In this document: in pieces, positions 23,601-38,526 of the stretch
Layout of the letters: each line of letters opens with the position of its first letter
Numbering within the stretch: the stretch's first letter is position 1
Sequence record: OP953026.1
Reading direction: 5' to 3' (one strand)
Length of the DNA: 64,000 nt
Notes under the pieces: model-generated
Databases searched by the model: none
Told to the model about the DNA's origin: nothing
The model's input: the letters and a program-made list of their open reading frames with translations, nothing else
Made by a program: the position numbers and the translations under genes

Positions 23601-24254
23601 ATGGCGTCAATCATTAGTCTACCTTTTATCAAACTAGTAATCAGCCGTAATAATAATTACACTGTTAACCATCAGTCAGGTGCTGATAATGTACCTCATC
23701 TATGTGTTAAAGTAAAACATTCTAACGGTTATGCCTGGTTCGGTATTATCATTGTTGATTATGAAAAACGTACCAGTGGTTGGACTGAAGAAGAATTCAA
23801 TGCAGTTGTAACTCGTTTCCATGAAGCAATGAATTCTCAATGTGATATCCAACGATTAGAAACAGACATTAACCGACTAATGGATTCCATCCAAGATGTT
23901 GTTACTGGTCGGAAACGACCAACCCTATTCGGCGGTGATAGTAATGACTTCATTCAAATGCATCTTCAAAATAATATCCAACTTGATATTTATCGGAATG
24001 AAATTAACGAAGATACTCTAACCTATGGTGGGTATCGTGGTAAAGTAAGTCTTCGCCATGGTTATGATGAATACAGCTTCTTCCTGTATCATCGTGGTAT
24101 TATTCTAAACCATTACATCGATGCAGAGATTGCTAAAGAGCTAATTGAAGATGCTCTTAATAAGACTTTCCCGGAGATTACTTATCTACCGCGAGCCACT
24201 GTCGAACCTACAGCAGTGGAACGCACTCGTAATAGACATCTGGATAAAAGTTAA
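23601..24254 (+). CDS. hypothetical protein
   Basis: 217 aa, AAAGGAA RBS. Confidence 0.85.
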   Translation: MASIISLPFIKLVISRNNNYTVNHQSGADNVPHLCVKVKHSNGYAWFGIIIVDYEKRTSGWTEEEFNAVVTRFHEAMNSQCDIQRLETDINRLMDSIQDVVTGRKRPTLFGGDSNDFIQMHLQNNIQLDIYRNEINEDTLTYGGYRGKVSLRHGYDEYSFFLYHRGIILNHYIDAEIAKELIEDALNKTFPEITYLPRATVEPTAVERTRNRHLDKS

Positions 24255-24255
24255 A

Positions 24256-24669
24256 ATGACTAGTCAACTTATCGTAGTTGATTTACAAAACCCTAGAAAT
24301 AAACATATATACAGTGAATTAACTCATGAACACCCTAGAACAATAACATCACATCTAGTTGAAGAATTAGATGATTTTGATGTTCATCAATATTCATACC
24401 AAGCGGAGTATAAATCTGGGATTGATCTTAGATTAATATTCTTTTGGGATGGACCATACACTGAACCAAGAGAAGAAGGTTACGAACCAACTGATCTAGA
24501 GAAAAGGTGTGTGAAGTTGTGTAGGCAATATGAGGCTGCGATTAACGGGCAATTATCTGTAGTTGATCACTCTCGGTTCCGGACGGTGTGTACCTTCAGA
24601 TCAGATAATAGTTTACCAACAACTTTAGACTGGATTCATAAAGAACCCCCATCTAAAGAGGTTGTGTAA
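24256..24669 (+). CDS. hypothetical protein
   Basis: start moved to ATG 24256, immediately after the previous stop. Confidence 0.7.
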   Translation: MTSQLIVVDLQNPRNKHIYSELTHEHPRTITSHLVEELDDFDVHQYSYQAEYKSGIDLRLIFFWDGPYTEPREEGYEPTDLEKRCVKLCRQYEAAINGQLSVVDHSRFRTVCTFRSDNSLPTTLDWIHKEPPSKEVV

Positions 24670-24695
24670 AAAATAGTAAAAGAAATACACTATTC

Positions 24696-24790
24696 TATGT
24701 AGTTCCTTTACGATTGCTCTTTTATCTTAGTTTCAGTTTTGCTGAAGAAGTACCAATGAGATACCCTCCCCTGATCGGGGAGGGTTTTTG
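24696..24790 (+). ncRNA. candidate sRNA C (late promoter to terminator)
   Basis: TATGTAG start motif, no ORF, TTCAG/CTGAA hairpin, terminator 24763-24785. Confidence 0.45.
24763..24785 (+). terminator. intrinsic terminator
   Basis: ACCCTCCCC-TGATC-GGGGAGGGT plus TTTT. Confidence 0.85.
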
Positions 24791-24810
24791 ACATCTAAGA
24801 GGAAAATATA

Positions 24811-25191
24811 ATGTGCAAACAACATCGTGTAGTATCTATGAAAGTTACATGCACGCAAGCTCGCTATCCGATCGGTCTGTGCGATCTCGGATTTGATAAT
24901 GCTGCTGATGCTCGGCAATATCTACTAGATGTCGTCGAGTACAATATGGATCGTCTCCACCCACAACATGCTAATACATTCCAGCTACAAAATCTACAAG
25001 ACGGGTTCGTAGTATCCTACGATATCGAAAAAGATGGATCCGTTTATCTTCGGTTAACACTGGCGGCTGTAGCTTATCAATCAATCGATCTTGAGTTGGG
25101 GGTTACCGTTAAAGAAAATGAAGGGATCAGTGTTGTAATCAAAAATTGGATCAATGGTGATTATACTGCGGGGAACAAATACTTGCAGTAA
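24811..25191 (+). CDS. hypothetical protein
   Basis: 126 aa, GAGGA RBS. Confidence 0.8.
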   Translation: MCKQHRVVSMKVTCTQARYPIGLCDLGFDNAADARQYLLDVVEYNMDRLHPQHANTFQLQNLQDGFVVSYDIEKDGSVYLRLTLAAVAYQSIDLELGVTVKENEGISVVIKNWINGDYTAGNKYLQ

Positions 25192-25196
25192 TACCA

Positions 25197-25320
25197 TATG
25201 TAAAGAATACCCAAATCGGGATCTCCCGGACTATCTCCCTTCAGCGTTCCCGTCCGCAAATGAAGGTGCCGCCGAGATCCCACCTATTGATAATGCCCTC
25301 CCTTCGGGGAGGGCTTTATT
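25197..25320 (+). ncRNA. candidate structured sRNA B
   Basis: TATGTA start motif; GGGATCTC/GAGATCCC, CCTTCA/TGAAGG and GCG/CGC nested stems; terminator 25295-25313. Confidence 0.6.
25295..25313 (+). terminator. intrinsic terminator
   Basis: GCCCTCCC-TTC-GGGAGGGC plus TTTATTT. Confidence 0.85.
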
Positions 25321-25357
25321 TCGCTTAAGCCTATTTATTTTATTATAAGGGGTGAAA

Positions 25358-26089
25358 ATGACATATATCGTAAATGATGGTAAAGTCATGATTGCAGACT
25401 GCCTATTAATTGAGCGGAATAATGCAACTGATAGCATTGGGCGACTTCCAGTATTAGATAACGGTTATATTGATCTAACTGCTAAAGCTGAAGGTGTAGA
25501 TGTATATTACAATGATTGCCACAAGATAATTTTTCATCCGACTGTTACTTGGCAAGGCAAACGTGTTAAAACTATGGCTTTTGCTGGAACTATAGATAAT
25601 GTTTATGATCTATTGAATGCCCTTACCGCAGGTGTTGATTTAGCTGATTGGTTTAAAGTTGAAGTAAATATCTTGCCAGTCATAGAACGCAGGTTGTTTA
25701 ATGGTAATACTTCTATGATGTTCACTATGGAGAATGGTGACATATATACAGTTATTCTTAAAGACATGGGTATCAACATCACCAAGAAAGATTGGGCTCA
25801 TTTGGGTAGTGGTGTAGATGCAGTTAATAGTGTACTTGAGTTTATCCCTAATTGTAATGATAATGGATCAACCAAACTAACTGCACTTGAAGCATTTGCT
25901 ATTGCATGTGCACATACTACTACTGTAAGTCGTAAATTTGATTATTACATCCATGCTACAGGTGAGTACAAGCAAAATCAAGAACTATCAACTAAACAAC
26001 TAAAATGGATACTAGCGCGCATTCAAAAGCGGATGGATCTTACCCGCATTTTCAATGACCGCGAATATGCCAATAACATATGGGGTTGA
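25358..26089 (+). CDS. Ntn-hydrolase (HslV/proteasome beta-like) peptidase
   Basis: M-T-YIV..G..MIAD, K, MAFAG, LGSG, ALEAFAIA; ATG 25358 leaves Thr as the N-terminal nucleophile. Confidence 0.7.
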   Translation: MTYIVNDGKVMIADCLLIERNNATDSIGRLPVLDNGYIDLTAKAEGVDVYYNDCHKIIFHPTVTWQGKRVKTMAFAGTIDNVYDLLNALTAGVDLADWFKVEVNILPVIERRLFNGNTSMMFTMENGDIYTVILKDMGINITKKDWAHLGSGVDAVNSVLEFIPNCNDNGSTKLTALEAFAIACAHTTTVSRKFDYYIHATGEYKQNQELSTKQLKWILARIQKRMDLTRIFNDREYANNIWG

Positions 26090-26094
26090 TTTGT

Positions 26095-26610
26095 ATGAGT
26101 AATTCTAATATGGATATGCTATATTACACTAATGTAAATTGGGAGCAATATTTTCATCATGTGAAACAACGTGCAGATGATACTGTTAAAGTAATGTATA
26201 AACCTGAATATGAAGATCTTATTGATGAAGCATGTAGACCATTGATTAAATGGTTTAACCAATTCACCAATATTGCAACTATTTATTGTTGTTCAGGCCA
26301 TGTTGATGAAGAAACTGGTGGTAGCCCTGGATACATTAGTCTTTTATTTAAAGACACTAATGCAGAGAATTCTGCAATGCGTTTATTACGTGAAGCAATG
26401 TGTAAGGGGCGTGAGTGTAAGATCCCATTCGAAATTGAACTGGGGGCTTATTTCGGGCATCTACATGAGACCATTGATCAGAATCACTGGGTCGCCAATC
26501 TAGTCATCCGCACCAATAGCTACAAACGTAAAAATACGTATGATCGCTATTGGCATCGTCTTTACAACATCATAACAACATGTAATACTGAAGGTTTATA
26601 CACCGTCTAA
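26095..26610 (+). CDS. hypothetical protein with TIYCCSGH motif
   Basis: LIKWFN...IATIYCCSGH...GYI; TYW3 N-terminal-like pattern; start at ATG 26095. Confidence 0.7.
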   Translation: MSNSNMDMLYYTNVNWEQYFHHVKQRADDTVKVMYKPEYEDLIDEACRPLIKWFNQFTNIATIYCCSGHVDEETGGSPGYISLLFKDTNAENSAMRLLREAMCKGRECKIPFEIELGAYFGHLHETIDQNHWVANLVIRTNSYKRKNTYDRYWHRLYNIITTCNTEGLYTV

Positions 26611-26629
26611 AAAAATCTGAGATAATTTA

Positions 26630-26779
26630 ATGAATGATATTAAAAATACATTATTAGTTAGATTAAAGAGGAAACAAAAAGCTAAGCGTATAGATAAATT
26701 ACAAAGACTAGGTTTATGGTTTATTCTATTGCTATGTGTATCTAATCTATTTGTCCAATTAATAAAAGGTATATTCTAA
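26630..26779 (+). CDS. 49 aa basic, C-terminally TM-anchored peptide (not in ORF track)
   Basis: fills the gap exactly up to the next ATG. Confidence 0.55.
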   Translation: MNDIKNTLLVRLKRKQKAKRIDKLQRLGLWFILLLCVSNLFVQLIKGIF

Positions 26780-27460
26780 ATGGTAGAAAAGCTCAGTTTT
26801 GCTGATATATTTAAGATGGCTAAAGAGGAAAATGTTAAGCTTGAATTGCATTGTCTAATTGGTACTCGACCAGTTAGGGGTCTTATTAAAAGTTTAAACT
26901 TTAATTCAATCAGACCTGATATATGTGAATCTGTTAATTTATATGTAAATGTATTTTCTAAAGTAGTAGAGGCTAGAGTAGATCTATCAAGTACTACTGC
27001 TGATTATGGTTGCTGGAGAATGACGCCAGAAACTAAGAATTATGTAGATAGTAAATATAACTTACCAGAAAAAATTGATATCACTAATCCAGATATCGTT
27101 AGGAGTAATATTAATTATTACCTCAGTTTACCTACTAAGGAACGCACTGAGTTATTTAATAAAATAAATAATCCTAATGTCATTGAGGCAATAAACAAAG
27201 AATGGTCTAAAATGGTTGTAGAGTATTATCAATTTGAGATCGATTCGTTTATTGGATTAATTGATTTCGATCATGTCCTTATCAGTAAGTTCATGGTATT
27301 TAACTGGATGGATGATCTGTTTGAATATGCTTTAAATATCCCATTAAAACAAACCAATACAGTAAATGAAGGCACCTGTTGCTTACTGGTTCACAAAGAT
27401 AAAAAGGCAACATATACCCATTTTACTGATATTAAAAATCTTATCAAAGTAAGTGTATAA
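26780..27460 (+). CDS. hypothetical protein
   Basis: 226 aa ORF. Confidence 0.8.
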   Translation: MVEKLSFADIFKMAKEENVKLELHCLIGTRPVRGLIKSLNFNSIRPDICESVNLYVNVFSKVVEARVDLSSTTADYGCWRMTPETKNYVDSKYNLPEKIDITNPDIVRSNINYYLSLPTKERTELFNKINNPNVIEAINKEWSKMVVEYYQFEIDSFIGLIDFDHVLISKFMVFNWMDDLFEYALNIPLKQTNTVNEGTCCLLVHKDKKATYTHFTDIKNLIKVSV

Positions 27461-27472
27461 TTACGGCATAAA

Positions 27473-27494
27473 CCCCTCTCCGTATGGAGAGGGG
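27473..27494. terminator. bidirectional terminator at convergent junction
   Basis: CCCCTCTCC-GTAT-GGAGAGGGG. Confidence 0.85.
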
Positions 27495-27520
27495 ATATGT
27501 CTTTATTTTTTTATTTAAAC

Positions 27521-27910
27521 TCACTTAGAAAAATCTTCTACTGGAATATCATCCAGCCAATCATTAAGTAGTTTAAATTGATGAGGGTGTTGCATCTTAG
27601 TAACTTTACCATACTTAACACTAACTGCTTTACCAGTAGACACGGCAAGATCAACTAGTTTCTTTTCATATGCATTAAACTCATCATACCACCGAGTATG
27701 AATAAGTTTTGCTAGGCGATCGTAAGCCGTCTTTCGATAATGATCTTCTTGTTCGCGACGCTGTTCGTCAAGTAGTTCTTTTTGACGTTGTTCTTGCTGA
27801 CGCTTTTCTTCTTCCTTTTTCTCTTTCTCTAGTCGTTTCTTCTCAGCAAAATATGATAGAACCGGTAGTTTGAAAAGTAGGCTTAGAAGTAGTTGAAAGA
27901 ATTGTTTCAT
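27521..27910 (-). CDS. amphipathic N-terminus / coiled-coil protein
   Basis: start moved to MKQFF (GAGGA RBS); charged coiled coil. Confidence 0.8.
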   Translation of the reverse strand: MKQFFQLLLSLLFKLPVLSYFAEKKRLEKEKKEEEKRQQEQRQKELLDEQRREQEDHYRKTAYDRLAKLIHTRWYDEFNAYEKKLVDLAVSTGKAVSVKYGKVTKMQHPHQFKLLNDWLDDIPVEDFSK

Positions 27911-27990
27911 TAGTATTTCCTCAGTTTGATTAAATAGATAATTTACAAATGGCAATCCGCCTAGTTACATACTAGATAGCTGTAAGTATT

Positions 27991-28401
27991 TTAATCCGTT
28001 ACAATGTCTGGATAACGTTCATCAATTAATGATTTTCTATATGCAAACTCACGCACCTCTGCTTCTAATTTTTCTTTAGTTGCATCTGTAGCACCGATCA
28101 CAATAATTGAATCATTATTAATTGATAACTCTACGTCATTATCTTTTCCAAATACTAATTTAAAAACAGTATTTAATTCATCTAATTGATCTTGAACGGT
28201 TACTGTATCATCATGGATTGCCCTAGACGGTTCCTCTAATAGACCCTCTAGCACTTTATAAGACTTTATAAAAAGAGTATCATTAAAATCTTCTTTTAAC
28301 CATGTTAATTCAAGTGTATATAAATCAACCACTCTATTAAGATTTGAAGTAGTTATATCTGTTTTCCATTCATAACCTAGATAGTTAGTTTCATTACTCA
28401 T
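27991..28401 (-). CDS. hypothetical (possibly virion) protein, gp293-like
   Basis: 136 aa, AAGGAG RBS, upstream TATGTA late motif. Confidence 0.8.
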   Translation of the reverse strand: MSNETNYLGYEWKTDITTSNLNRVVDLYTLELTWLKEDFNDTLFIKSYKVLEGLLEEPSRAIHDDTVTVQDQLDELNTVFKLVFGKDNDVELSINNDSIIVIGATDATKEKLEAEVREFAYRKSLIDERYPDIVTD

Positions 28402-28443
28402 TATAAACTCCTTTGATTAATACATATTAAATAATCTGGAGTA

Positions 28444-28620
28444 TTATTTCTTTGTAATGCGATAACCAACTGACCATAAATCTATACGGACGAAACCTTT
28501 TCCCTCATGTTGACCGTATAAACATACACGTAACATTCTATTACCTGGCTTCATATCAATTCGTGTTACCTCAAATTTATTAGTAATGTATTCTTGGATG
28601 ATAAATAATAGATGACTCAT
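28444..28620 (-). CDS. 58 aa hypothetical protein (not in ORF track)
   Basis: AGGA RBS; MSHLLFIIQEYITNKF... Confidence 0.7.
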   Translation of the reverse strand: MSHLLFIIQEYITNKFEVTRIDMKPGNRMLRVCLYGQHEGKGFVRIDLWSVGYRITKK

Positions 28621-28651
28621 TTTATATTTTCCTGATTAATGACAAACATAA

Positions 28652-28671
28652 GCCCCTCCATATGGAGGGGC
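28652..28671 (-). terminator. terminator hairpin
   Basis: GCCCCTCC-ATAT-GGAGGGGC. Confidence 0.8.
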
Positions 28672-28749
28672 AATATGATTTACTGAGTCTTTCGCGTTCA
28701 ATCCCATCCTAACTAATATATTTAAGAATAGTTTAAACCTCAGTAAATT

Positions 28750-28826
28750 TGGTGCCGCCACTCCGAATCGAACGGAGGACCTACGCATTACAAGTGCGTT
28801 GCTCTACCTAGCTGAGCTATAGCGGC
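28750..28826 (-). tRNA. tRNA-Thr(UGU)
   Basis: full cloverleaf, anticodon TGT, encoded CCA. Confidence 0.95.
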
Positions 28827-28909
28827 GGAATCTTCTACATATAGTGTATATGAAAGTATTATTTTATTTATTATAATAAATAAAGTTATATTCAAACATA
28901 TTTAAACAG

Positions 28910-28917
28910 TATATCAT
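28910..28917 (+). promoter_or_regulatory. early promoter variant (TATATCAT)
   Basis: same TATTCAAA..TATTTAAACAG context as canonical promoters. Confidence 0.6.
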
Positions 28918-28973
28918 TAACTTGATATTACTAAAAGTAATATTTTCTATTAATTGTAAATAGGATACTAAAT

Positions 28974-29111
28974 ATGAATATTGATCCAAAAACTCTTGGC
29001 ATTATTATTAGCACCACTATTGGCACCGTAGGTGCTCTTATTCTTACGTATGGTATTGCGAGAGCAGTACGTTGGAATAATAAACCTGATGTAAAAGATG
29101 TAGCAGAGTAA
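28974..29111 (+). CDS. 45 aa single-TM peptide in its own transcription unit
   Basis: AGGA RBS; MNIDPKTLGIIISTTIGTVGALILTYGIARAVRW...; own promoter and terminator. Confidence 0.7.
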   Translation: MNIDPKTLGIIISTTIGTVGALILTYGIARAVRWNNKPDVKDVAE

Positions 29112-29121
29112 GATAACATAA

Positions 29122-29144
29122 AGCTAGCCCATTAGGGGCTAGCT
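29122..29144. terminator. terminator at convergent junction
   Basis: AGCTAGCCC-ATTAG-GGGCTAGCT. Confidence 0.8.
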
Positions 29145-29168
29145 CTTATATTTATTTTTTTATTTGTT

Positions 29169-29798
29169 TTAACTTAGAGTACTATAATAAATAAATTTAG
29201 TTAATTCATCTTGTTGCTCTTTGATTATATTATTTTTCGTTTGTTTAACATTAATGTAATATTCAATAAATAACCAACGTCTATCATGTTTGGCTAAGTC
29301 TTTGAATTCAATTTTCTCAAATCGCCATGACTGTACAGTAGTCCTAATGAGATTACCGGATTTATTGATAATATACCCTTGCATGGTGTTAATTTGATCA
29401 TCGATAGTAGGCGTTGGTAAAAATATCAAATAAACACCATCTGTATTTTTAGTGTGCATACTTTTTAATTTATACATCATTGGGTTAAAGTATTCATCAC
29501 TTTTATGATAATCGCTTAATTCTAACACAGCATCAATCATCATTTTAGCGCTTTCAGTAACACCAACATTTAGTAAATAATCATTAAGCTCTTTTAATGA
29601 ATTATCTGTAAGTGATGCATCTATGTGTTCTTCACTTATAGGTTCATTATAAACTAGTTTATTAATAGTTGAATTAACAATATTTAGCCTATCGATATCA
29701 TAAACTGCTAGTGTTTGTTTACCAACATTTATTTTTAAGTCTTTACCTGATTCATTGATAAAATCATTTAAATCTACTTCAGTAAAATGAAAAGCCAT
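29169..29798 (-). CDS. hypothetical protein
   Basis: 209 aa, AAGGT RBS. Confidence 0.8.
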   Translation of the reverse strand: MAFHFTEVDLNDFINESGKDLKINVGKQTLAVYDIDRLNIVNSTINKLVYNEPISEEHIDASLTDNSLKELNDYLLNVGVTESAKMMIDAVLELSDYHKSDEYFNPMMYKLKSMHTKNTDGVYLIFLPTPTIDDQINTMQGYIINKSGNLIRTTVQSWRFEKIEFKDLAKHDRRWLFIEYYINVKQTKNNIIKEQQDELTKFIYYSTLS

Positions 29799-29957
29799 TT
29801 TTATACACCTTTATGTTTTCCGTAGTGTTAAATTTTATTAACACCCGGTTTCAAGTTGAGTTATGTGTAGAACTAATCTACAAATAATATTAACTCTATG
29901 TATAATTTTACTTATAAATAGACCACTCTATATAGAGGGGTATTAAGTCATATAAAG

Positions 29958-30053
29958 TTATTTTAGTGTGGGTCTAAATACAAACATTACGTCTACTTCA
30001 TCAGTTGGGTCGACATCATATTCTGTCCCAGTATTATCAATCGCAACCAACAT
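29958..30053 (-). CDS. 31 aa acidic peptide (tentative)
   Basis: GAGGA RBS; MLVAIDNTGTEYDVDPTDEVDVMFVFRPTLK. Confidence 0.4.
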   Translation of the reverse strand: MLVAIDNTGTEYDVDPTDEVDVMFVFRPTLK

Positions 30054-30055
30054 TC

Positions 30056-30178
30056 TCACATTCCTCGGTAAAGGGCTTTATGTGATTTAGATAGGCGAGT
30101 GATAAAATACCTAAATGCACTGAGATATTCTCTGATAAATCCTTTACCTTTATTAAAATTATCACCTACATGGACCAT
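30056..30178 (-). CDS. 40 aa peptide (tentative)
   Basis: MVHVGDNFNKGKGF...; abuts the next small ORF. Confidence 0.3.
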   Translation of the reverse strand: MVHVGDNFNKGKGFIREYLSAFRYFITRLSKSHKALYRGM

Positions 30179-30269
30179 TCAATCACTTTTATGTAGCTTG
30201 ATTTCAATCAATTAAAGGGTATAACGAATGTAATGTATTTATACACGAATATAGTTATCATAAGCTCAA

Positions 30270-30560
30270 CTACTTGGGGTAAAAGAGTGGACGGAGATCA
30301 GTCTCATGGTATTCATCTTTGATATGGGAAAAGTACTTATTGAAATTATCCACACTATACGAAGTTCTAAGCCCATTTGGCCAAATCACTAACATGTCAC
30401 CAACTTCGAATGCCGTGATCATAGCCTCAAAGTCTTTTATGTTTACATGATCATTACCAAGTTTCACGAATCGACATGCACGGAAACCACATTCCCAGTC
30501 AGACGACATCCATTGACCAGCCTCAGTAATCAGCTTTGCACGAACTAATGTCTTAGCCAT
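30270..30560 (-). CDS. hypothetical protein
   Basis: 96 aa ORF. Confidence 0.8.
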   Translation of the reverse strand: MAKTLVRAKLITEAGQWMSSDWECGFRACRFVKLGNDHVNIKDFEAMITAFEVGDMLVIWPNGLRTSYSVDNFNKYFSHIKDEYHETDLRPLFYPK

Positions 30561-30738
30561 ACTTGGTACCCCAGTTTATCGTTTTGTCGAGAAGAGCTTG
30601 ACTAGGTCGTTTATTACGAATCTGATTCTTAATAGACTCATTTAGCTCTTCCATCGTTTTCCGAACTTTAACTAATCGTTCCTTTTGTTCATTTGTAGGA
30701 ACACTACTAACTATATCTTGCAATGCTTTAAGTGACAT
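30553..30738 (-). CDS. hypothetical protein
   Basis: 61 aa, AGGT RBS. Confidence 0.7.
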   Translation of the reverse strand: MSLKALQDIVSSVPTNEQKERLVKVRKTMEELNESIKNQIRNKRPSQALLDKTINWGTKYG

Positions 30739-30799
30739 GTCTTTACCCTATTTGTATTCAGCTATAAGATTCAACTACTGGGTACTTTTACAAGACGAC

Positions 30800-30825
30800 A
30801 TAAAGGCAGCATTAGCTGCCTTTAT
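30800..30825 (-). terminator. terminator hairpin
   Basis: ATAAAGGCAGC-ATTA-GCTGCCTTTAT. Confidence 0.8.
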
Positions 30826-30869
30826 AGTTTACATAGTAGTGAAATATAACTAAATCTAAAACTATGAAT

Positions 30870-30945
<76 letters not shown>

Positions 30946-31106
30946 AGAATTATGGCGATTTTATATTAGAGATGAGTTACTGACAACCTAATATAGATAT
31001 GTAATAACTACATATTATTACAATCTGAGTATTATTTATTTCTTGTTATGACATTATGTAAATAACGTGTAGTTAATCTTATTAGAAACTATCAAAGTTA
31101 CTAATT

Positions 31107-31619
31107 CTAACTAAAACGAACCACCATTACCTCTGTACCAAAAGTATCTGCAACCCACTGGTTAAATTCTTTATCAGTGATACCGCGTAGGTTCAGATTA
31201 AATGAGGCATTGTCAACAAGAATATATTTTACAGACGATATTAATTCTTCTTTAATATCTTTTTGAATAGATGATTCCTCAGGTTGATGAATATATTTAC
31301 GGAGTTGGTGTGTAATTAAACAAGAAACAATATTATCTTTAGCATTCTGGAACTTAGCCAGTACAGCCTGTTTAATTTTATCTTCTACAAATACAGCTAG
31401 ACATTCGCCAGGATGACGATTAGCAAACTCAATCAATGCAGTTGTACTACCACATTGCCGACCTACAAATAATCCAACAGTCCTGTATTCACGAATAACA
31501 ATATGACCAATAGAATTAGATCGATAATTAACCCAGTTCTCATTCGTTTTTTGAATTAAAGCATCTAGGATATCTTGGTACTTTACAATAGTTCTTACAA
31601 ACTGATTAGAGTTAGTCAT
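31107..31619 (-). CDS. degenerate P-loop NTPase-like protein
   Basis: EYRTVGLFVGRQCGSTT (Walker A Lys replaced by Ser) and YILVDN. Confidence 0.6.
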   Translation of the reverse strand: MTNSNQFVRTIVKYQDILDALIQKTNENWVNYRSNSIGHIVIREYRTVGLFVGRQCGSTTALIEFANRHPGECLAVFVEDKIKQAVLAKFQNAKDNIVSCLITHQLRKYIHQPEESSIQKDIKEELISSVKYILVDNASFNLNLRGITDKEFNQWVADTFGTEVMVVRFS

Positions 31620-31903
31620 AATAGACTCCTTTATTACAATGTAGCATAGATTCAGTTTTTTAACTGGAATTAAATGCCGATTTTGAAAAGGTGATAAAAC
31701 CTTTTCTCATCTATAAATGAATTTATAATAGTAACAATGAATATAACCAGGGGTGGCAAACCCCTGGCATTTAGACACACTCTATAATAAGTTCTACCAC
31801 CGAGTGTGTTTAGTGGATAGATTTAAGAATACTTTATTATAGTACTCTTACATAATATCATCGTGCCAGTATAATTATCTAAATAGTTATAAATATTATT
31901 ATT

Positions 31904-32911
31904 TTAATCAATGATTAATGGTGCTAGTTTTACCTGATAGATACCTGATAACAATTGGCTTTTCAACATATATGCTCCACCACCAACTGGCATTTTAGAT
32001 CCACCTACAATGATCATGCTATTATCCGGACCTTTAGCTATAGATGAAATATTAAGGAATCCGATACCTAGTTCAAATGGTTCAGCCCATTTCCGGCGCC
32101 TAATATTAAAACGTTGTGCAAACATTTTAGTTACACCGCCGACATCAACAGCGTTAAGGTAATTAAAATAGTCCCCATCTACATAACCATTACCTTGCCA
32201 GATTGTTCCTTTATCAGCAGGTATAATCATCCAAGGTGTTTGCTCCCATATTAAGGTAGTTGCATTATATCGATAAACTTCAAGATTAGGTATGTTCTTT
32301 GTATTATCCCAACCACCAAAATGGTAAAAGTAACCATTATAAAAGAATAACTGTTGACCTGAACGAGCACCACCTGAATAGTCTTGCCCGCTAAGCCAAG
32401 ACTTACTTGATGGTTTTAATCGCATTGCGTTTACGCCAATTGGGTTAACGCATAGAATAAGATCATTACCATCTGATGCGGAGGCTGTGCCCCAAAGTGG
32501 TACGGGACCACTATATCGCTCAACCCTATTGCCTGTAGCTATATCAAAATGTTGTATAAAGTTAGATGTTCCCGTACCACCATTACCAGCCGAGTTCCAT
32601 CCAGTAATACCGCCATAAACAATAAAGTTATTCTTATGTAATGTCCCAAATCCTAAAGATACCCCTGGTAAGAATGTTCCAGAAGCAGTTGCACCTATAT
32701 CGGCAAATGGCGATATGGTAAAACGTCTGAACACAGTTGCAGCTGTTTGTCCTTCAGTATGATGACCAGATCCAACATACAGTGTATTTCCATCCACATA
32801 TGACATTGTACCAGCTAACGCTACAGGTAGATCACCTAATTTAATAATTTCATTAAATCCAACCAAGGGTAACTCTTCGCCTATATCTGGTGATAATAGT
32901 AATTCAAACAT
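31904..32911 (-). CDS. Kelch/beta-propeller protein (paralog 1), probably virion-associated
   Basis: repeated YxxGG(W) blades; MFELLL N-terminus; TATG late motif upstream. Confidence 0.8.
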   Translation of the reverse strand: MFELLLSPDIGEELPLVGFNEIIKLGDLPVALAGTMSYVDGNTLYVGSGHHTEGQTAATVFRRFTISPFADIGATASGTFLPGVSLGFGTLHKNNFIVYGGITGWNSAGNGGTGTSNFIQHFDIATGNRVERYSGPVPLWGTASASDGNDLILCVNPIGVNAMRLKPSSKSWLSGQDYSGGARSGQQLFFYNGYFYHFGGWDNTKNIPNLEVYRYNATTLIWEQTPWMIIPADKGTIWQGNGYVDGDYFNYLNAVDVGGVTKMFAQRFNIRRRKWAEPFELGIGFLNISSIAKGPDNSMIIVGGSKMPVGGGAYMLKSQLLSGIYQVKLAPLIID

Positions 32912-32961
32912 GAGTATATTCTCAAGTAATACAGTTAAGTCATAAGATAAACGGTAACGGC

Positions 32962-32989
32962 ATAAAGGCAGCCAAATGGCTGCCTTTAT
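32962..32989 (-). terminator. terminator hairpin
   Basis: ATAAAGGCAGCC-AAAT-GGCTGCCTTTAT. Confidence 0.85.
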
Positions 32990-33063
32990 AAGGTGTAAAG
33001 ACTGTTACCAATACTAAGGTACCCTGCCCCTCTGTGAGGTTCTAGCATTGGTGTACGTAACAC

Positions 33064-34077
33064 CTACTTATCACTTGGTGGTAGTGGAGCAGGAAGGATG
33101 AACTTGTATATTTCTGTCTTCGTTTCTGCCTTTCTACCGAACGGTGGGTTAGTCGAGCCCAACGGAATTGAACATCCGCCAACCAGATACAGCTCTCCTT
33201 TATTACCAACCACACCGGTCGCGTTGCGATAGCTAATACCCGTATCAAAACGAATAAATCTTTTACCAGACACATCATAGCGAACCGCACCGAGTTTACT
33301 ACCACTCCAGCTAATATAGCTGAAGATACCTTCATGGTAGTTACCGGCGCCCTGGTTACCACCATGGTATTCGGTAGGTAATATATCGTACACTTCCCAC
33401 AATTGTGTATAAATCGACATTCTCATGATTGTCGTCATTGCTGTCCCAGCATCGAATTTCGCCAGGTGATCCGGATTTGATGCAACACTGGATCCCCATC
33501 CACCCATCACGTAAATGTAGCCTTTATGTTTGAATATAAAAGCACCACTTAGACTAGCAGCAGGAAAGCCTTTCGGGCTGTTATGATAGACGCCATCGGT
33601 TGTGTAATAACCGAACTGATTACTATCGTGGAATTGGACGTAAATTCTGTTGTTATCTTCGTCAAATACCGTGGAGTTACCATAGTTCCCACGAGGAGTG
33701 CTCCAACCAAGATTAGTTATAGTCTCCGCAGAAGCATCTATGGCATGGACCACGCTAGAACTCCAGCTACCATTAGACCTACCGTTGATTAAATAAACTC
33801 TACCAGTTCGTGAGTCTTGCGCTGGATTCGTATGATAGATGTAGTTGCTTAAATTCTTATTATTCTCAAACGTACCATCTAATTTAAACCTGCGTAATCC
33901 TGGATCACTAGAACTAACATCTGTACCGCCACCCTTAACGAATAGTTTATCGTTCCAAATATAAGGGATAGAACCATGTAACGGAATATCCAGGTCAGCT
34001 ATTTTTTCATAACCGATATATTGTACTAATTCAACTGGCTTTATTTTACCACTAGTTGCTAATAGTAATTCAAACAT
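33064..34077 (-). CDS. Kelch/beta-propeller protein (paralog 2), gp298-like
   Basis: LFVKGG, IYVMGGW, LYLVGG; MFELLL N-terminus. Confidence 0.85.
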   Translation of the reverse strand: MFELLLATSGKIKPVELVQYIGYEKIADLDIPLHGSIPYIWNDKLFVKGGGTDVSSSDPGLRRFKLDGTFENNKNLSNYIYHTNPAQDSRTGRVYLINGRSNGSWSSSVVHAIDASAETITNLGWSTPRGNYGNSTVFDEDNNRIYVQFHDSNQFGYYTTDGVYHNSPKGFPAASLSGAFIFKHKGYIYVMGGWGSSVASNPDHLAKFDAGTAMTTIMRMSIYTQLWEVYDILPTEYHGGNQGAGNYHEGIFSYISWSGSKLGAVRYDVSGKRFIRFDTGISYRNATGVVGNKGELYLVGGCSIPLGSTNPPFGRKAETKTEIYKFILPAPLPPSDK

Positions 34078-34131
34078 GAGTGTGCTCTCAAGTAAATCAT
34101 TTTAATTCATAAGATAACCCATGGCAACATA

Positions 34132-34155
34132 AAAGAGTAGCCGAAGCTACTCTTT
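34132..34155 (-). terminator. terminator after tRNA pair
   Basis: AAAGAGTAGC-(TTCG on - strand)-GCTACTCTTT. Confidence 0.85.
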
Positions 34156-34161
34156 AGAATA

Positions 34162-34237
<76 letters not shown>

Positions 34238-34243
34238 ATTAAA

Positions 34244-34320
34244 TGGCGCGCCCAAGGGGACTCGAACCCCTGACCACCCGCGTGACAGGCGGGTATTCTA
34301 ACCAACTGAACTATGAGCGC
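34244..34320 (-). tRNA. tRNA-Asp(GUC)
   Basis: cloverleaf, GTC, CCA. Confidence 0.95.
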
Positions 34321-34372
34321 AAACGTATGGACATGACTTCCTACATAGTATTACATAACCAGTAATATTTTA

Positions 34373-34720
34373 TTACGGGCGATCAGTCCAGTGCTTGAAA
34401 TAGTTACCATCCTTGGGACGATCGTACTTAGCAAGAATATTTTTAAGTTCTTCGCCGGACAACTTAATACTATCGCCTACTGGGCTATCCAGTTCAGGGC
34501 AAGGTTCAGTTTTACGTGTAATGATTAAATTATCAGTCCCATCTTTGAAGATAAAGATAAACTGCGTTTCATTAGCACTAATCTTTTTCTTAACGCAATG
34601 CTTTACTTCTGGATGTTTCTTGTGGATCGCTACAAAAGATTCAACAAGAGTTAGCTTTATAAACTCAGGGCTAATAAATGTGAAATATACAGCGCTCTGC
34701 GTTGGGGTTAGATGATCCAT
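34373..34720 (-). CDS. hypothetical (possibly virion) protein, gp299-like
   Basis: 115 aa, GGAG RBS. Confidence 0.8.
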   Translation of the reverse strand: MDHLTPTQSAVYFTFISPEFIKLTLVESFVAIHKKHPEVKHCVKKKISANETQFIFIFKDGTDNLIITRKTEPCPELDSPVGDSIKLSGEELKNILAKYDRPKDGNYFKHWTDRP

Positions 34721-34722
34721 AT

Positions 34723-35028
34723 TTACTCCGTATGTTTGAGATAGGCTTTAACTGCTTTAAGACCTTTATTAAAGAACATAGCTTCAACATAAGTAATGTT
34801 ACTTACATCCTCGCCGATAAGTTCCCATTTGATGCAACGTGTAACAGCGTTGATTGTAATATCTAATCCGTTTGGGAATAGGGTTACTTCATCGGTCAGG
34901 TGAATCCAATCGGGAGCCTTCGCTCCATTACGTAAACGGGGACTAAAAGTAAGATTATAAAGTGTTTGTAATGGTTGTCTCAATAGTTCTTTTTGTTCTT
35001 GATGTTCCATGTATTTTCCTAGAGACAT
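34723..35028 (-). CDS. hypothetical protein
   Basis: 101 aa ORF. Confidence 0.75.
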   Translation of the reverse strand: MSLGKYMEHQEQKELLRQPLQTLYNLTFSPRLRNGAKAPDWIHLTDEVTLFPNGLDITINAVTRCIKWELIGEDVSNITYVEAMFFNKGLKAVKAYLKHTE

Positions 35029-35240
35029 TTAAAAATATAAATAGAATGGTTATCTCTTTCGGTTATCTTTAGAGTATTCTCATTTCGAATAACTTCAAGA
35101 GACTTGTATTTATGTTCCAGAATATCCAGATGAGAAATACACTGTTCCCTATTTTCAAATAGGATATTACTTTCATTAGTCGAAATGAAACCAAATAATC
35201 CAACTTTGATAGATAATACCAACATTATTACTGTATTCAT
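35019..35240 (-). CDS. small protein with N-terminal hydrophobic segment
   Basis: start moved to MNTVIML (GAGGA RBS, after terminator). Confidence 0.7.
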   Translation of the reverse strand: MNTVIMLVLSIKVGLFGFISTNESNILFENREQCISHLDILEHKYKSLEVIRNENTLKITERDNHSIYIFKCL

Positions 35241-35266
35241 GTTTTCCTCAATGAGACAGTATAAAA

Positions 35267-35284
35267 CCTCCCCCAAGTGGGAGG
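35267..35284 (-). terminator. terminator hairpin
   Basis: CCTCCC/GGGAGG stem with TTTT on - strand. Confidence 0.75.
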
Positions 35285-35292
35285 CTAGTATA

Positions 35293-35369
35293 TGGTGGGC
35301 CCAGCAGGACTTGAACCTGCGACCAAGCGATTATGAGTCGCCTGCTCTAACCAACTGAGCTATAGGCCC
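35293..35369 (-). tRNA. tRNA with CAU anticodon, probably tRNA-Ile2 (lysidine type)
   Basis: GCAGGCGACTCATAATCGCTTGGTCGC matches the ileX-type body as recalled. Confidence 0.85.
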
Positions 35370-35376
35370 TTTTTAT

Positions 35377-35670
35377 TTATTCTGGTAAGAATGTTCCATC
35401 TTTTTGACGGACTAATACACCTGACCATTTGAATGTATTTGTATCACTAGCAGGGCACTCTCTAATTACATTGGTTCTAAATGTGCCATGTGGATAGGTT
35501 ACAGTGAATGTAATATGGTTATTACAAACATGTAATACAGAAGACTTTGCTTCTGTTAGATAGTGTAAGCCTTGAGCTAATTGAATATTAGTTAATTCAG
35601 GGTCACTAAGAATAGCGTAAAGAGCTGTTCCTATAATTTGATGTTCCCATGATATCCATTTATTATCCAT
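35377..35670 (-). CDS. hypothetical protein
   Basis: 97 aa, AGG RBS. Confidence 0.75.
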   Translation of the reverse strand: MDNKWISWEHQIIGTALYAILSDPELTNIQLAQGLHYLTEAKSSVLHVCNNHITFTVTYPHGTFRTNVIRECPASDTNTFKWSGVLVRQKDGTFLPE

Positions 35671-35691
35671 CCTATTTACCTATTATTAAAA

Positions 35692-35767
35692 TGGTCGGAG
35701 TGGGGAGACTCGAACTCCCGACATCCTGCTCCCAAAGCAGGCGCGCTACCAACTGCGCTACACTCCG
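35692..35767 (-). tRNA. tRNA-Pro(UGG)
   Basis: cloverleaf, TGG, CCA. Confidence 0.95.
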
Positions 35768-35776
35768 TATTTAAAT

Positions 35777-35861
35777 TGGTGCCCGAAGTCGGATTCGAAC
35801 CGACAAGACCGTAGCCGGAAGATTTTAAGTCTTCTGTGTTTACCAATTTCACCATTCGGGC
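35777..35861 (-). tRNA. tRNA-Leu(UAA)
   Basis: cloverleaf with long variable arm, TAA, CCA. Confidence 0.95.
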
Positions 35862-35919
35862 ATTGTGCTTCAATACATAACATGTAATGCTAGGTATTTT
35901 ATTACAACTTATTTTAAAT

Positions 35920-36372
35920 TCAACGTGGCCATTGTAAAGAAGTTATCTTATTACCATTAATGTAGACATCGGTCACTTCGCACCAATCATTAATTCTGTG
36001 TTCAATAATTGGAACATCATTTCGGCCAGCCACTCCAATCATATTCCATTTAACATAAATATTCATTAGATCAATTGTTAATTTCTCTTTTATGAGTTTA
36101 GGAGAAATTAATTTAATATTATTAATGTTAAAGAAGTAATTATTAACTTCTTCTAAATATTCATTAGTATTAGTAGTACTAACTTTGCCTTCATGTTCAA
36201 GTGAGGATGGTTTATTCTGATTTACAATATTGCTCACTAGACTTCTTAAAACGGCACTTGCCCTACCAGCTTCGCGTCTTTTATACTTATCATAGTCTTT
36301 TACATTAGCTGCAATTTTATCAAATTCTTTTTGGGCATAGATTAGCCCTGGTAAAAGTTCATTTTTGATCAT
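35920..36372 (-). CDS. hypothetical protein
   Basis: 150 aa ORF. Confidence 0.8.
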   Translation of the reverse strand: MIKNELLPGLIYAQKEFDKIAANVKDYDKYKRREAGRASAVLRSLVSNIVNQNKPSSLEHEGKVSTTNTNEYLEEVNNYFFNINNIKLISPKLIKEKLTIDLMNIYVKWNMIGVAGRNDVPIIEHRINDWCEVTDVYINGNKITSLQWPR

Positions 36373-36424
36373 TTTATAATTACTCTATGTTGTTTATACA
36401 TATTTTAATATACATACGTAAAAA

Positions 36425-36573
36425 CAAAATATAAAGCCTCCCCGAAGGGAGGCGATATATCGTCATTAATGCCCAGCAAAGAGTTTTACTCTCTGGGAGC
36501 CAGTTGGAAGGGGGACTGGCTCCGATCTATTATGACTAATGTAGAAACAAGGGGGAGGGATTATTTCTACATA
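36425..36573 (-). ncRNA. candidate sRNA A with C-rich anti-SD loops
   Basis: TATGTAG start motif; three hairpins (loops UCCCUCCCCC and CCCCCUUCCA); UUCG terminator 36436-36453. Confidence 0.65.
36436..36453 (-). terminator. intrinsic terminator
   Basis: GCCTCCC-TTCG-GGGAGGC then TTTATATTTT on - strand. Confidence 0.9.
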
Positions 36574-36585
36574 ATATTAGATACA

Positions 36586-38526
36586 TTACTGGTAGTTTTC
36601 ATTACCCATTGCTAACCTACCTTTTATAGACCGATCTACCCATTTTGCGGCGGCCTCCATGATATCAATGAATGAGTGGTATTGCCGCATTTTATTAACT
36701 TCCATCACATCATCATCAATCCCAGGGCCAAAGCATGCGAATAACAAATCATTCCAATCATAGTAATCGATACCAGCTATTGGACTAGGGTTATCCAACA
36801 TATCGTAGATTAGTCCTTCCAGTGGATCTGGTAAATCAGGGAACTTGAAGCTAAGAGTTATCTGACGTTCCAATGCCGATATAATTAAGTTCATGGCCTT
36901 AGCTGCTTCTTCTTCAGTAAGAGCTTTGAGTTTACTATCAGTAGATGGATATTTCGCGACCACGGTGCGAGGTGAATTATAGGTACCCTTACCTGTAATA
37001 GTACCGGCAGGCCATTTAACACTAGTCTTGAATCCAGCACGTGCCTTGTCTACGATAGCCTTTGCTTCTTTGTATACGTTAGCGTCTAGGTTATGTGCAT
37101 TCTTAATGAGTAGATCCAATGCAGGTTTAGTCTTCTGCCTGTAAGACTCCATTTCGCGATTAGACTTTTCTTCGAGTTTGAAGAATGGTTCTACTGCACG
37201 AATGGCATCCTCGATACTGACTTTACCATTAATACTCAGTACGTTAGCTATACCATTACTATTGATATCGCCAGTAACGAATACCTGCTTATTAAGCCAT
37301 TGTGGATTGCCAAATGTAGATTCTAGTTGTTCCAGAAATCCTCTTGCACTGGACGATGAACGCCAGATACGTTTCTGATCACCTCGATTAGAAATGCCAA
37401 GAACTTTTTTGATTGAATCGATAAGACCTTCATTTGAGACTTGTATAAAACCGGGAGTATTAATGATGGACTTCTCTACATACCCGCCACGAATAACCCG
37501 ATTTATAAAACCATTAAGACCACTACCAGTTTCGGCCATATCTTTCATGATTTCTATATTCGTTTCACCGGCACTTTGGGCATTGTATAAATAATAAGAA
37601 CCATCTTTGAATTTCAGTATAATCCAGTCATCCCCAGTTAGATATGAATCAATATTACTATCATTCATACTTTGATATTTAATGAATTCTGGATTAGTAC
37701 TTAATACTTCTTCAATGAATTCTTCTAATGCCGCAGAATTATTAATAGCATCAACCGGTAGAATTTCACCATCAATGGGTTCAGTAGTTGGACCAGTAAC
37801 AATGGCAGGTAACGGATCCTCCTCTACAATAACAGTTTCTTCCACTGGTAGAGCACCACATGAAGCATCAATTAGTTTATTAAAACTACTAATGATCTCA
37901 CCAAGTGCTACAAGAACTGCTGGCTGTTCAACTTGTTCAACTTTAGCAATACCAGTTTCTGTAAATTCTTCAGTGATTCGGTTATAAACTTCTACTAGTT
38001 GGTTAGTAAGTTCTGCTACTTTTGGCAGAGTCTGCTTAGACAGAGGTTCAACTACAGTTGTATCTGCTTCAACAAAAATAGAATCATCTTCTTCTAAACG
38101 GCTAGTATTAGCTGAGCCAGCTGTGAAGTTATAAGGCATATCTTGAATTACTTCATTAATTTCAGATGCCTCCATATCTTCATTTAGACGACCACTATAA
38201 GTACGCATCATACCTTCTGCTTCTTTAATAGTGGAATGCGCTAAGCGTCCCCAATCACCACGCATAATACCGCGCTCGGTAAGACCGCGTGCAGCTGAAC
38301 CAAGATCAATAGGTTCTTCAATAAATGATTGTTCTTCAACCCACTCTTCATTACTGTAACATTCTTTTAGAATGGTTTTAAATTTAGTACTAAAGGGTTG
38401 TAGAATCTTTTTATCTACTTGTTCAACATTTGTTTTAAAGTGTTCTAGACTTGGTGTAGCTTTTGAAGATACTTTTTCAGTACCGCTATATAGCGTACGG
38501 TTTAGGAAGTTTAGCATTTTATTCAT
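36586..38526 (-). CDS. internal head protein, gp303-like
   Basis: 646 aa acidic; (S/A/G)xE prohead-protease sites (VSNE|GL, MGNE); recalled phiKZ gp303 N-terminus. Confidence 0.75.
   Translation of the reverse strand: MNKMLNFLNRTLYSGTEKVSSKATPSLEHFKTNVEQVDKKILQPFSTKFKTILKECYSNEEWVEEQSFIEEPIDLGSAARGLTERGIMRGDWGRLAHSTIKEAEGMMRTYSGRLNEDMEASEINEVIQDMPYNFTAGSANTSRLEEDDSIFVEADTTVVEPLSKQTLPKVAELTNQLVEVYNRITEEFTETGIAKVEQVEQPAVLVALGEIISSFNKLIDASCGALPVEETVIVEEDPLPAIVTGPTTEPIDGEILPVDAINNSAALEEFIEEVLSTNPEFIKYQSMNDSNIDSYLTGDDWIILKFKDGSYYLYNAQSAGETNIEIMKDMAETGSGLNGFINRVIRGGYVEKSIINTPGFIQVSNEGLIDSIKKVLGISNRGDQKRIWRSSSSARGFLEQLESTFGNPQWLNKQVFVTGDINSNGIANVLSINGKVSIEDAIRAVEPFFKLEEKSNREMESYRQKTKPALDLLIKNAHNLDANVYKEAKAIVDKARAGFKTSVKWPAGTITGKGTYNSPRTVVAKYPSTDSKLKALTEEEAAKAMNLIISALERQITLSFKFPDLPDPLEGLIYDMLDNPSPIAGIDYYDWNDLLFACFGPGIDDDVMEVNKMRQYHSFIDIMEAAAKWVDRSIKGRLAMGNENYQ

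Follow-up and report, generated by a model that had tools for sequence, protein, structure and literature searches.

In a 64,000-nucleotide stretch of sequence record OP953026.1, referred to here as the window, three intergenic units raise the question of whether a phage could use small RNAs (sRNAs) to control access to ribosome-binding sites (RBSs). A preliminary description of this DNA had proposed that unit 1 (24696-24790, plus strand), unit 2 (25197-25320, plus strand) and unit 3 (36425-36573, minus strand) form a set of late-promoter sRNAs, each exposing pyrimidine runs complementary to Shine-Dalgarno (SD) sequences. Over the 2-kb and 1.2-kb stretches that were compared, the window is 99.5-100% identical to 46-47 Phikzvirus genomes infecting Pseudomonas aeruginosa, phiKZ included; it is not the phiKZ reference itself but is closely related to it (99.5%). 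Window position 24000 is equivalent to phiKZ 261971 and position 35900 to phiKZ 273479, and the units occupy the PHIKZ287.1/288 (unit 1), PHIKZ288/289 (unit 2) and gp303/PHIKZ302 (unit 3) spacers. Among nucleus-forming jumbo phages, phiKZ serves as the model; it is also a candidate for phage therapy, and its redirection of translation is understood only in part. From the predicted folds described below, an exposed anti-SD-like sequence is a property of unit 3 and not of a set.

The loci and transcripts of all three units have been known since 2024 from an Oxford Nanopore Technologies (ONT)-cappable-seq study of phiKZ (Putzeys et al. 2024, Microlife, PMC10914365; Table S7 in the preprint 10.1101/2023.10.13.562163). 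Seventeen short RNAs were catalogued there without an assigned function, a candidate being defined by a primary 5' end (transcription start site, TSS) and a defined 3' end (transcription termination site, TTS) less than 250 nt apart. All three units have such ends, and they coincide within 1-4 nt with TSS/TTS pairs of Tables S7, S3 and S5 of that study. Unit 1 corresponds to an 89-nt transcript ahead of PHIKZ288 (TSS 262671 to TTS 262760, promoter P129, terminator T118), unit 2 to a 120-nt transcript ahead of PHIKZ289 (TSS 263172 to TTS 263292, P130, T119) and unit 3 to a 141-nt transcript ahead of PHIKZ302 (TSS 274148 to TTS 274007, P144, T131) (PMC10914365). The 141-nt RNA is presented in Figure 6B of the same paper, and its length and abundance were confirmed by Northern blot. 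The discrete short RNAs foreseen in the preliminary description, with starts at TATG sites and ends at the terminators it had noted, are present in these published maps.

Putzeys et al. labelled the RNAs as 5' untranslated region (5'UTR)-derived non-coding RNA (ncRNA) candidates, assigned them no function, made no mention of C-rich or anti-SD loops, and regarded them as products of conditional premature termination (PMC10914365). The units described here are at the same loci as those candidates, the window sequence being only a close relative of the phiKZ reference. A literature search found no functional study of the three RNAs. The two exposed anti-SD-like loops of unit 3 appear not to have been remarked on previously, and the role suggested for them below is a hypothesis and not a finding. 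In the text copy of Table S7 (preprint 10.1101/2023.10.13.562163), the sequence printed for entry 274148-274007 (minus) is that of the plus strand and shows G-rich loops; the promoter, the terminator and the order of TSS and TTS are those of the minus strand, and the RNA itself has C-rich loops.

The exposure of each pyrimidine run was expressed as the probability of being unpaired, P(unpaired), from partition-function folding, and the folds are predictions. All three beat shuffled controls, with z = -3.3 for unit 1, -4.5 for unit 2 and -6.4 for unit 3. The unit 3 RNA (36429-36570, minus), between gp303 and the PHIKZ302/tRNA operon, has a predicted folding energy of -52.8 kcal/mol and consists, in order, of a first stem-loop (SL1, 30 nt), a 17-nt spacer, a second stem-loop (SL2, 28 nt), a third hairpin and the terminator. 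SL1 (36541-36570) has a 10-bp stem that begins at +1 and a 10-nt loop, UCCCUCCCCC, at 36551-36560, and SL2 (36496-36523) has a 9-bp stem and a 10-nt loop, CCCCCUUCCA, at 36505-36514. The runs UCCCUCCCCCUU of SL1 (RNA positions 11-22) and UCCCCCUUCC of SL2 (RNA positions 56-65) are predicted to be largely free, with P(unpaired) of 0.85 and 0.91, respectively, and C accounts for 80% of the first loop and 70% of the second. Such loops are rare in the window. Among 828 hairpins with a stem of at least 7 bp and a loop of 7-13 nt, three loops are at least 60% C, and two of these belong to SL1 and SL2. The 64 kb hold approximately 55 C-rich 10-mers; some 20 are terminator arms and the others, bar the unit 3 loops, are coding, which leaves these two loops as the only intergenic C-rich 10-mers without a G-rich partner arm. 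No comparable exposed C-run was seen in the 13 other published phiKZ candidates, a comparison that is approximate because it used a text copy obtained by optical character recognition (OCR), and the idea that exposed C-runs are a shared trait of the phiKZ ncRNA set was rejected.

The main runs of units 1 and 2 are predicted to be paired. In the unit 1 RNA (24699-24790, plus, 89-92 nt), the terminator takes its 5' arm from the run CCCUCCCCU (P(unpaired) 0.11), and UUCCUUU near the 5' end (24703-24709) has a P(unpaired) of 0.71. In the 120-nt unit 2 RNA (25200-25321, plus), a long stem takes in the first UCUCCC (0.19), and the second is half-paired (0.60). Its one free C-run is a 5-nt UUCCC (0.99) in the apical loop UUCCCGUC (25247-25254) of a conserved 5' hairpin domain (25218-25281). 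The pyrimidine runs pointed out earlier do exist, but the exposure claimed for all of them is predicted for the unit 3 loops and not for the main runs of the other two RNAs. As candidate anti-SD regulators, units 1 and 2 should be set aside.

Pairing was evaluated on the 80 annotated translation-initiation regions (TIRs) of an almost identical genome, with coding regions as controls. AGGA is found in 34 of these TIRs, AGGU in 21, AAGGAA in 11, GGGG in four and GGAGG in none. The loop of SL1 favors TIRs over the coding controls (mean of -5.4 versus -3.6 kcal/mol, p = 1e-5), and the preference of the SL2 loop is marginal. No preference for TIRs was detected for the 5' segment of unit 1 (p = 0.076) or for the loops of unit 2 (p = 0.8 and 0.31). 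The AAGGAA-type SDs to which the unit 1 segment had been matched are common, as proposed, and UUCCUUU pairs with AAGGAAA at -7.2 kcal/mol compared to -5.6 kcal/mol for the tail of 16S rRNA, but the segment does not significantly prefer TIRs. With model sites, the unit 3 loops are weaker than the 16S tail on GGAGG (-9.5 versus -12.2 kcal/mol) and stronger on GGGAGG (-12.8 versus -11.3 kcal/mol), the only site type on which they win. A short-word BLAST of the three RNAs, together with a fourth small RNA of the region described further below, found no extended antisense match to phage genes in the window; what it returned was the shared terminator type and a chance-level 12-mer inside a coding region.

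From sequence comparisons, the conservation pattern of units 3 and 2 fits selection on the RNA. In T2P, the most divergent lineage, unit 3 is identical at 141 of 142 positions (99.3%), and gp302 is 72% identical in DNA and 68% in protein. In most relatives, T2P included, gp303 cannot be aligned over its C-terminal half. Since nucleotide homology resumes approximately 12 nt upstream of the TSS, unit 3 marks a mosaic boundary. The gp303 portion in question (36586-37500, minus), a head-protein segment, is hypervariable, and in most genomes tblastn covers 26% of it at no more than 48% identity. Among five distinct sequences of unit 3, the substitutions in the stems keep the pairing (99.5% of cells paired), with one compensatory change from A-U to G-C in SL1 and three one-sided wobble changes; in SL2, two one-sided changes to G-U leave the pairing intact. 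The loops vary at two of 20 positions, both from C to U, much as the RNA does elsewhere; divergence within the genus is too low to single the loops out as its most conserved part. This substitution pattern is consistent with the predicted fold of unit 3 and is not proof of it.

Unit 2 presents a comparable case. The first 83 nt of its RNA (25200-25282), which include the hairpin domain, are identical at 80 positions (96.4%) in T2P, and the flanking genes PHIKZ288 and PHIKZ289 are 83.5% and 78.7% identical. The T2P terminator has been replaced by a different hairpin while the 5' domain was kept; it is thus not the terminator that accounts for the conservation of this unit. Unit 1 is the same in 43 of 46 Phikzvirus genomes, but it is part of a larger conserved block (24257-24810). 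KEN49 (PP456877, 1095-1400) is alone in having an insertion of ~280 bp within unit 2, placed between the terminator and the conserved 5' domain at the equivalent of window ~25283-25295; Rfam gave no match to this insertion, and no other phage record contains a copy of it.

Unit 3 resembles two groups of known anti-SD sRNAs and is not a member of either family. In the RsaE/RNAIII class of S. aureus, unpaired UCCC motifs pair with SD sequences (Geissmann et al. 2009, PMC2790875). Unit 3 shares with that class (PMC2790875) a hairpin at the 5' end, a Rho-independent terminator and UCCC/CCCC motifs, here predicted to be unpaired and apical. In contrast, it shows no sequence homology to that class, is a gene of a lytic jumbo phage with a Gram-negative, GC-rich host, is known by its predicted fold, and has longer C-runs that favor GGGAGG/GGGG over the plain GGAGG core. 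A C-rich UCCC in an unpaired region is predicted for unit 3, is absent from unit 1 and is found in unit 2 only as the 5-nt UUCCC. The cuckoo/alpha-r14/CcsR sRNAs of the alphaproteobacteria (RF02344) are built from two to four adjacent hairpins of 24-50 nt, with CCUCCUCCC in each loop of 9-27 nt (PMC4615179). Unit 3 shares with them the two adjacent hairpins (30 and 28 nt), the 10-nt anti-SD-like C-rich loops and the variable stems; it differs in lineage and in carrying UCCCUCCCCC and CCCCCUUCCA in place of CCUCCUCCC. The Rfam ar14 model (RF02344) scored 19.7 bits on SL1 and SL2 together and 9.6 bits on a shorter stretch, compared to a gathering threshold of 58.8 bits, and membership was rejected on the basis of the score and the differing loop motif. 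Searches of 20 kb and of each unit against Rfam at permissive thresholds identified only tRNAs above threshold, and the weak matches to Phe_leader, STnc100 and ar14 were driven by terminators or C-rich loops. The likeness to C-rich-loop sRNAs that had been drawn for the whole set holds for unit 3, with its predicted anti-SD-type architecture, but not for units 1 and 2 with their paired runs.

The promoters do not assign the units to one temporal class. Each unit starts at TATGTA (24696-24701 and 25197-25202 on the plus strand, 36568-36573 on the minus strand), and the same word lies upstream of tRNA genes, both as described earlier. As a word, TATGTA is not enriched in the window, with 58 copies compared to 77.7 expected; it was rejected as a statistical signal, and the support for these sites is experimental. 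The start motif of the phiKZ non-virion RNA polymerase (nvRNAP) is TATG, and all three unit promoters have it with the G as +1. The preliminary description had taken TATG as a late promoter, which is correct in so far as it is the nvRNAP start motif; however, TATG is common to early-, middle- and late-class TSSs and to the tRNA promoters, and so does not define a late class. By published motif, P129 of unit 1 is early, P130 of unit 2 is middle and P144 of unit 3 is late (PMC10914365), these being motif classes and not measured timing, with the time points of the ONT libraries having been pooled.

When the upstream regions are aligned at TATG, an A-rich stretch with TACT at exactly -20..-17 is seen in unit 2, in the small RNA of the PHIKZ298/PHIKZ297 spacer, in three tRNA-gene promoters (tRNA-Thr, tRNA-Asn at 30870 and tRNA-Asp) and in two neighboring gene promoters. 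This geometry is that of the middle class of Wicke et al. The tRNA-Leu promoter P141 has a variant, AAAATACC, at -24..-17. The unit 3 promoter in the window has AAAACTACC at -29..-21; in PA7-type genomes it has the A-rich/TACT element at -20..-17, though the gene upstream is non-homologous. Across the window, TACT-N13-TATG occurs at eight sites compared to 4.3 expected, and seven of the eight cluster in 25180-34364 on both strands, where each lies in a spacer and points the same way as the gene, tRNA or small RNA that follows it. A late class, marked by late accumulation and by the absence of an early AT-rich or a middle AAA..TAC(T) element, does not describe the set, and the framing of the three units as a late-promoter set should be dropped.

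As had been reported, a terminator of the CCCTCCC/GGGAGGG type, consisting of a GC-rich hairpin and a T-run, closes every unit. The unit 1 terminator, T118 (24763-24785, plus), is a 9-bp GC stem followed by UUUUU; its hairpin, CCCTCCCC-TGATC-GGGGAGGG, occupies 24765-24785, and its 5' arm is the CCCUCCCC run. The unit 2 terminator, T119 (25295-25314, plus), was placed by its hairpin, GCCCTCCC-TTCG-GGGAGGGC, and by the fold. It also ends transcription units TU195 and TU197, and terminators of its type recur in the window at 1222, 11773, 46465 and 54923. The unit 3 terminator, T131 (36436-36453, minus), has the hairpin GCCTCCC-TTCG-GGGAGGC running from 36453 to 36436, is invariant in nine aligned genomes and also ends the gp304-gp303 late operon (TU238, TU239). 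T118 likewise closes TU194, the operon upstream, and TU197 extends through it into PHIKZ288; more generally, T118, T119 and T131 are partly read through from internal promoters (TU197, TU233-236) (PMC10914365).

The three modules share a layout in which a promoter for the phage RNA polymerase (RNAP) lies just past the upstream stop codon and ahead of the terminator of that operon. By the published maps of TSSs, TTSs and transcription units, transcripts from these promoters stop after 89-141 nt or read into the next gene. The units have the features of attenuator leaders, namely a GC hairpin and U-tract between TSS and start codon and both terminated and read-through RNAs. No other mapped promoter lies between the terminator and the start codon of PHIKZ288 or PHIKZ289; thus, units 1 and 2 are leaders of these genes. 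The situation at PHIKZ302 is different. Promoter P143 (36396-36402, minus; TSS 273977), which serves PHIKZ302 and the tRNAs and was also detected by differential RNA sequencing (dRNA-seq; Wicke 2021), lies downstream of T131, so that P144 mainly makes the 141-nt RNA. An intrinsic terminator 90-140 nt past the promoter, yielding a short RNA or a read-through mRNA, is a likeness to leader attenuators and premature-termination sRNAs, and the use of the unit sequence as the 3' end of the upstream operon is a likeness to 3'UTR-type sRNAs with their own promoter. Transcription in phiKZ is thought to be physically separate from ribosomes, and for this reason ribosome-coupled attenuation is unlikely for the units.

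The explanation tentatively preferred here is that units 1 and 2 are leaders with leaky terminators and that unit 3 is a trans-acting sRNA whose C-rich loops act on G-rich RBSs. How strongly the downstream gene is expressed would be set by the terminator in units 1 and 2, and the conserved hairpin at the 5' end of unit 2 probably modulates read-through or stability. Unit 3 would be a stand-alone sRNA gene with its own promoter and terminator, the downstream operon being served by P143, and its loops may pair in trans with G-rich RBS-type sequences (GGGAGG/GGGG) to block the access of ribosomes, in the manner of RsaE, RNAIII and the cuckoo sRNAs. Since the RBSs of the phage are A-rich and poor partners, the likelier targets would be G-rich sites of the host type or a limited number of phage mRNAs. 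A more specific version, in which unit 3 mimics the anti-SD of 16S rRNA and occludes host-type GGGAGG/GGGG sites while the A-rich sites of the phage (AAGGA, AGGU) escape, is regarded as unlikely.

Several observations weigh against a trans-acting unit 3. On the phage TIRs, which lack GGAGG, the SL1 loop is weaker than the 16S tail (mean of -5.4 versus -6.4 kcal/mol). The silencing of early and middle phage mRNAs that had been suggested is accordingly unlikely, with most RBSs A-rich and none of the 80 containing GGAGG. On both strands of the window, the loops find their best complements in phage terminators, whose G-rich 3' arms are already held in hairpins and so make implausible targets; trans-antitermination by the loops was also rejected, as they would be in competition with the adjacent intramolecular arm. 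Covariation is thin, with five distinct sequences, one compensatory pair and a shuffle control that was not decisive, and conservation between diverged genes could also reflect recombination within shared regulatory cassettes. An IMG/VR motif scan and a synteny search found no relative with the unit 3 loops outside the genus. The former, which asked for the two loop motifs at a matching distance, returned 19 loci, of which only that of the PA7 relative was accepted and the rest were attributed to chance in GC-rich DNA; the latter returned nothing, with gp302 confined to 47 Phikzvirus records. The pooling of time points noted above counts on the same side. Finally, the RNAPs of phiKZ work inside the phage nucleus, and unit 3 would need to reach the cytoplasm.

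A possible alternative, although a somewhat doubtful one, is that all three short RNAs are pure by-products, the aborted leaders of promoter/terminator cassettes with no function in trans. Their conservation would then come from promoter, terminator or mRNA-stability roles, or from the use of the cassettes as recombination linkers. Promoter-stem-loop cassettes of T4-type phages serve as recombination linkers between variable genes. The terminators, which also end upstream operons and are read through, agree with this alternative, as do the break in homology exactly at the unit 3 promoter and the location of unit 3 between two diverged genes. In 201phi2-1, the gp303 homologue is followed by the same layout at the syntenic spot, with TATGTA, approximately 70 nt and a terminator, and without C-rich loops; the 13 other phiKZ candidates, again with the approximation of the OCR copy, likewise show no exposed C-run of this kind. 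Premature termination is the interpretation of Putzeys et al. themselves (PMC10914365). However, a promoter or terminator role needs no pair of C-rich 10-nt loops of a kind otherwise near-absent from the hairpins of the window. The operon can do without P144, since a separate promoter past the terminator serves PHIKZ302, and the swap of the unit 2 terminator in T2P left a 5' domain that is 96% identical.

Unit 3 might instead act on a protein with affinity for C-rich single-stranded RNA, which it would sequester or recruit; this could be Rho or another host factor, or else an RNA-binding protein of the phage. Two closely spaced C-rich loops that are predicted to be exposed, the high abundance of the RNA and the scarcity of good RNA partners in the phage window are in keeping with a binder of this kind. 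A Rho decoy, however, would be of little use if phage transcription sits in the phage nucleus, apart from host factors, and Grad-seq, in its 10 min sample only, singled out just two other phage RNAs as non-ribosomal. This alternative is considered quite improbable.

The coordinated set of three late anti-SD RNAs, silencing host and/or phage mRNAs, is the original proposal, and it now appears very improbable. The transcripts exist, TATG is the start motif of the nvRNAP, AAGGAA-type SDs are present at 11 of 80 TIRs and the unit 3 loops contain CCUCC. Against this stand the early, middle and late motif classes behind a TATG common to all of them, the paired C-runs of units 1 and 2, the lack of TIR enrichment for the unit 1 segment and the unit 2 loops, and the poor match of phage SDs to the unit 3 loops; beyond a common terminator type, the three RNAs share neither sequence nor structure. 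Small peptides are scarcely credible as the product: an AUG-(10 codons)-UGA frame of 11 codons overlaps the unit 1 terminator, and a 64-aa open reading frame (ORF) across unit 2 (25154-25348) is also open in T2P and annotated in some genome records, but neither AUG is preceded by an SD, and the longer frame starts upstream of the mapped TSS, runs past the mapped terminator to its stop codon, has no PHROG or Pfam match and is broken by the insertion in KEN49. On these grounds the coding hypothesis for unit 2 was rejected and the description of the units as ORF-free upheld; three-frame translations contain no ORF of at least 10 aa behind a canonical SD in any of the three units, the same feature for which Putzeys et al. 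had screened (PMC10914365).

The surroundings of the units provide further small elements. The fourth small RNA (31743-31853, minus), in the PHIKZ298/PHIKZ297 spacer, corresponds to phiKZ 270595-270485 and is documented by Grad-seq, Northern blot and Table S7. It has the same build of promoter, hairpins and terminator, with TACT at -20..-17 and TATG, and a predicted fold with z = -5.3 and no C-rich loop. The minus strand of the window carries seven tRNA genes, and the unit 3 spacer precedes PHIKZ302 and the phage tRNA operon. Near tRNA-Thr, palindromic GC-rich hairpins with T-runs on both strands (28652-28671 and 29120-29146) have the look of bidirectional terminators separating small genes that are convergent or in tandem. 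The window lacks the HNH endonuclease PHIKZ296 found in the phiKZ reference, and only 132 nt separate 30738 and 30870. An extra gene of 337 aa (33064-34077, minus), located between gp298 and the tRNA-Asn/Asp pair, is distantly paralogous to the Kelch-like virion protein gp298 (31904-32911, minus), with 24% identity, and has no counterpart in the phiKZ reference or KEN51. Downstream of unit 2, PHIKZ289 (25358-26089, plus) matches its own family of unknown function; a weak additional similarity to the HslV peptidase family was found among PHROGs (E = 5e-5).

Singling out the two predicted exposed loops of the 141-nt RNA turns an entry in a catalogue into a specific and cheap test. If unit 3 mimics the anti-SD of 16S rRNA in the way regarded above as unlikely, this RNA and the phage tRNAs would together bias the ribosome pool towards phage messages, and unit 3 would be the first RNA-based device for the takeover of translation to be described for a nucleus-forming phage.

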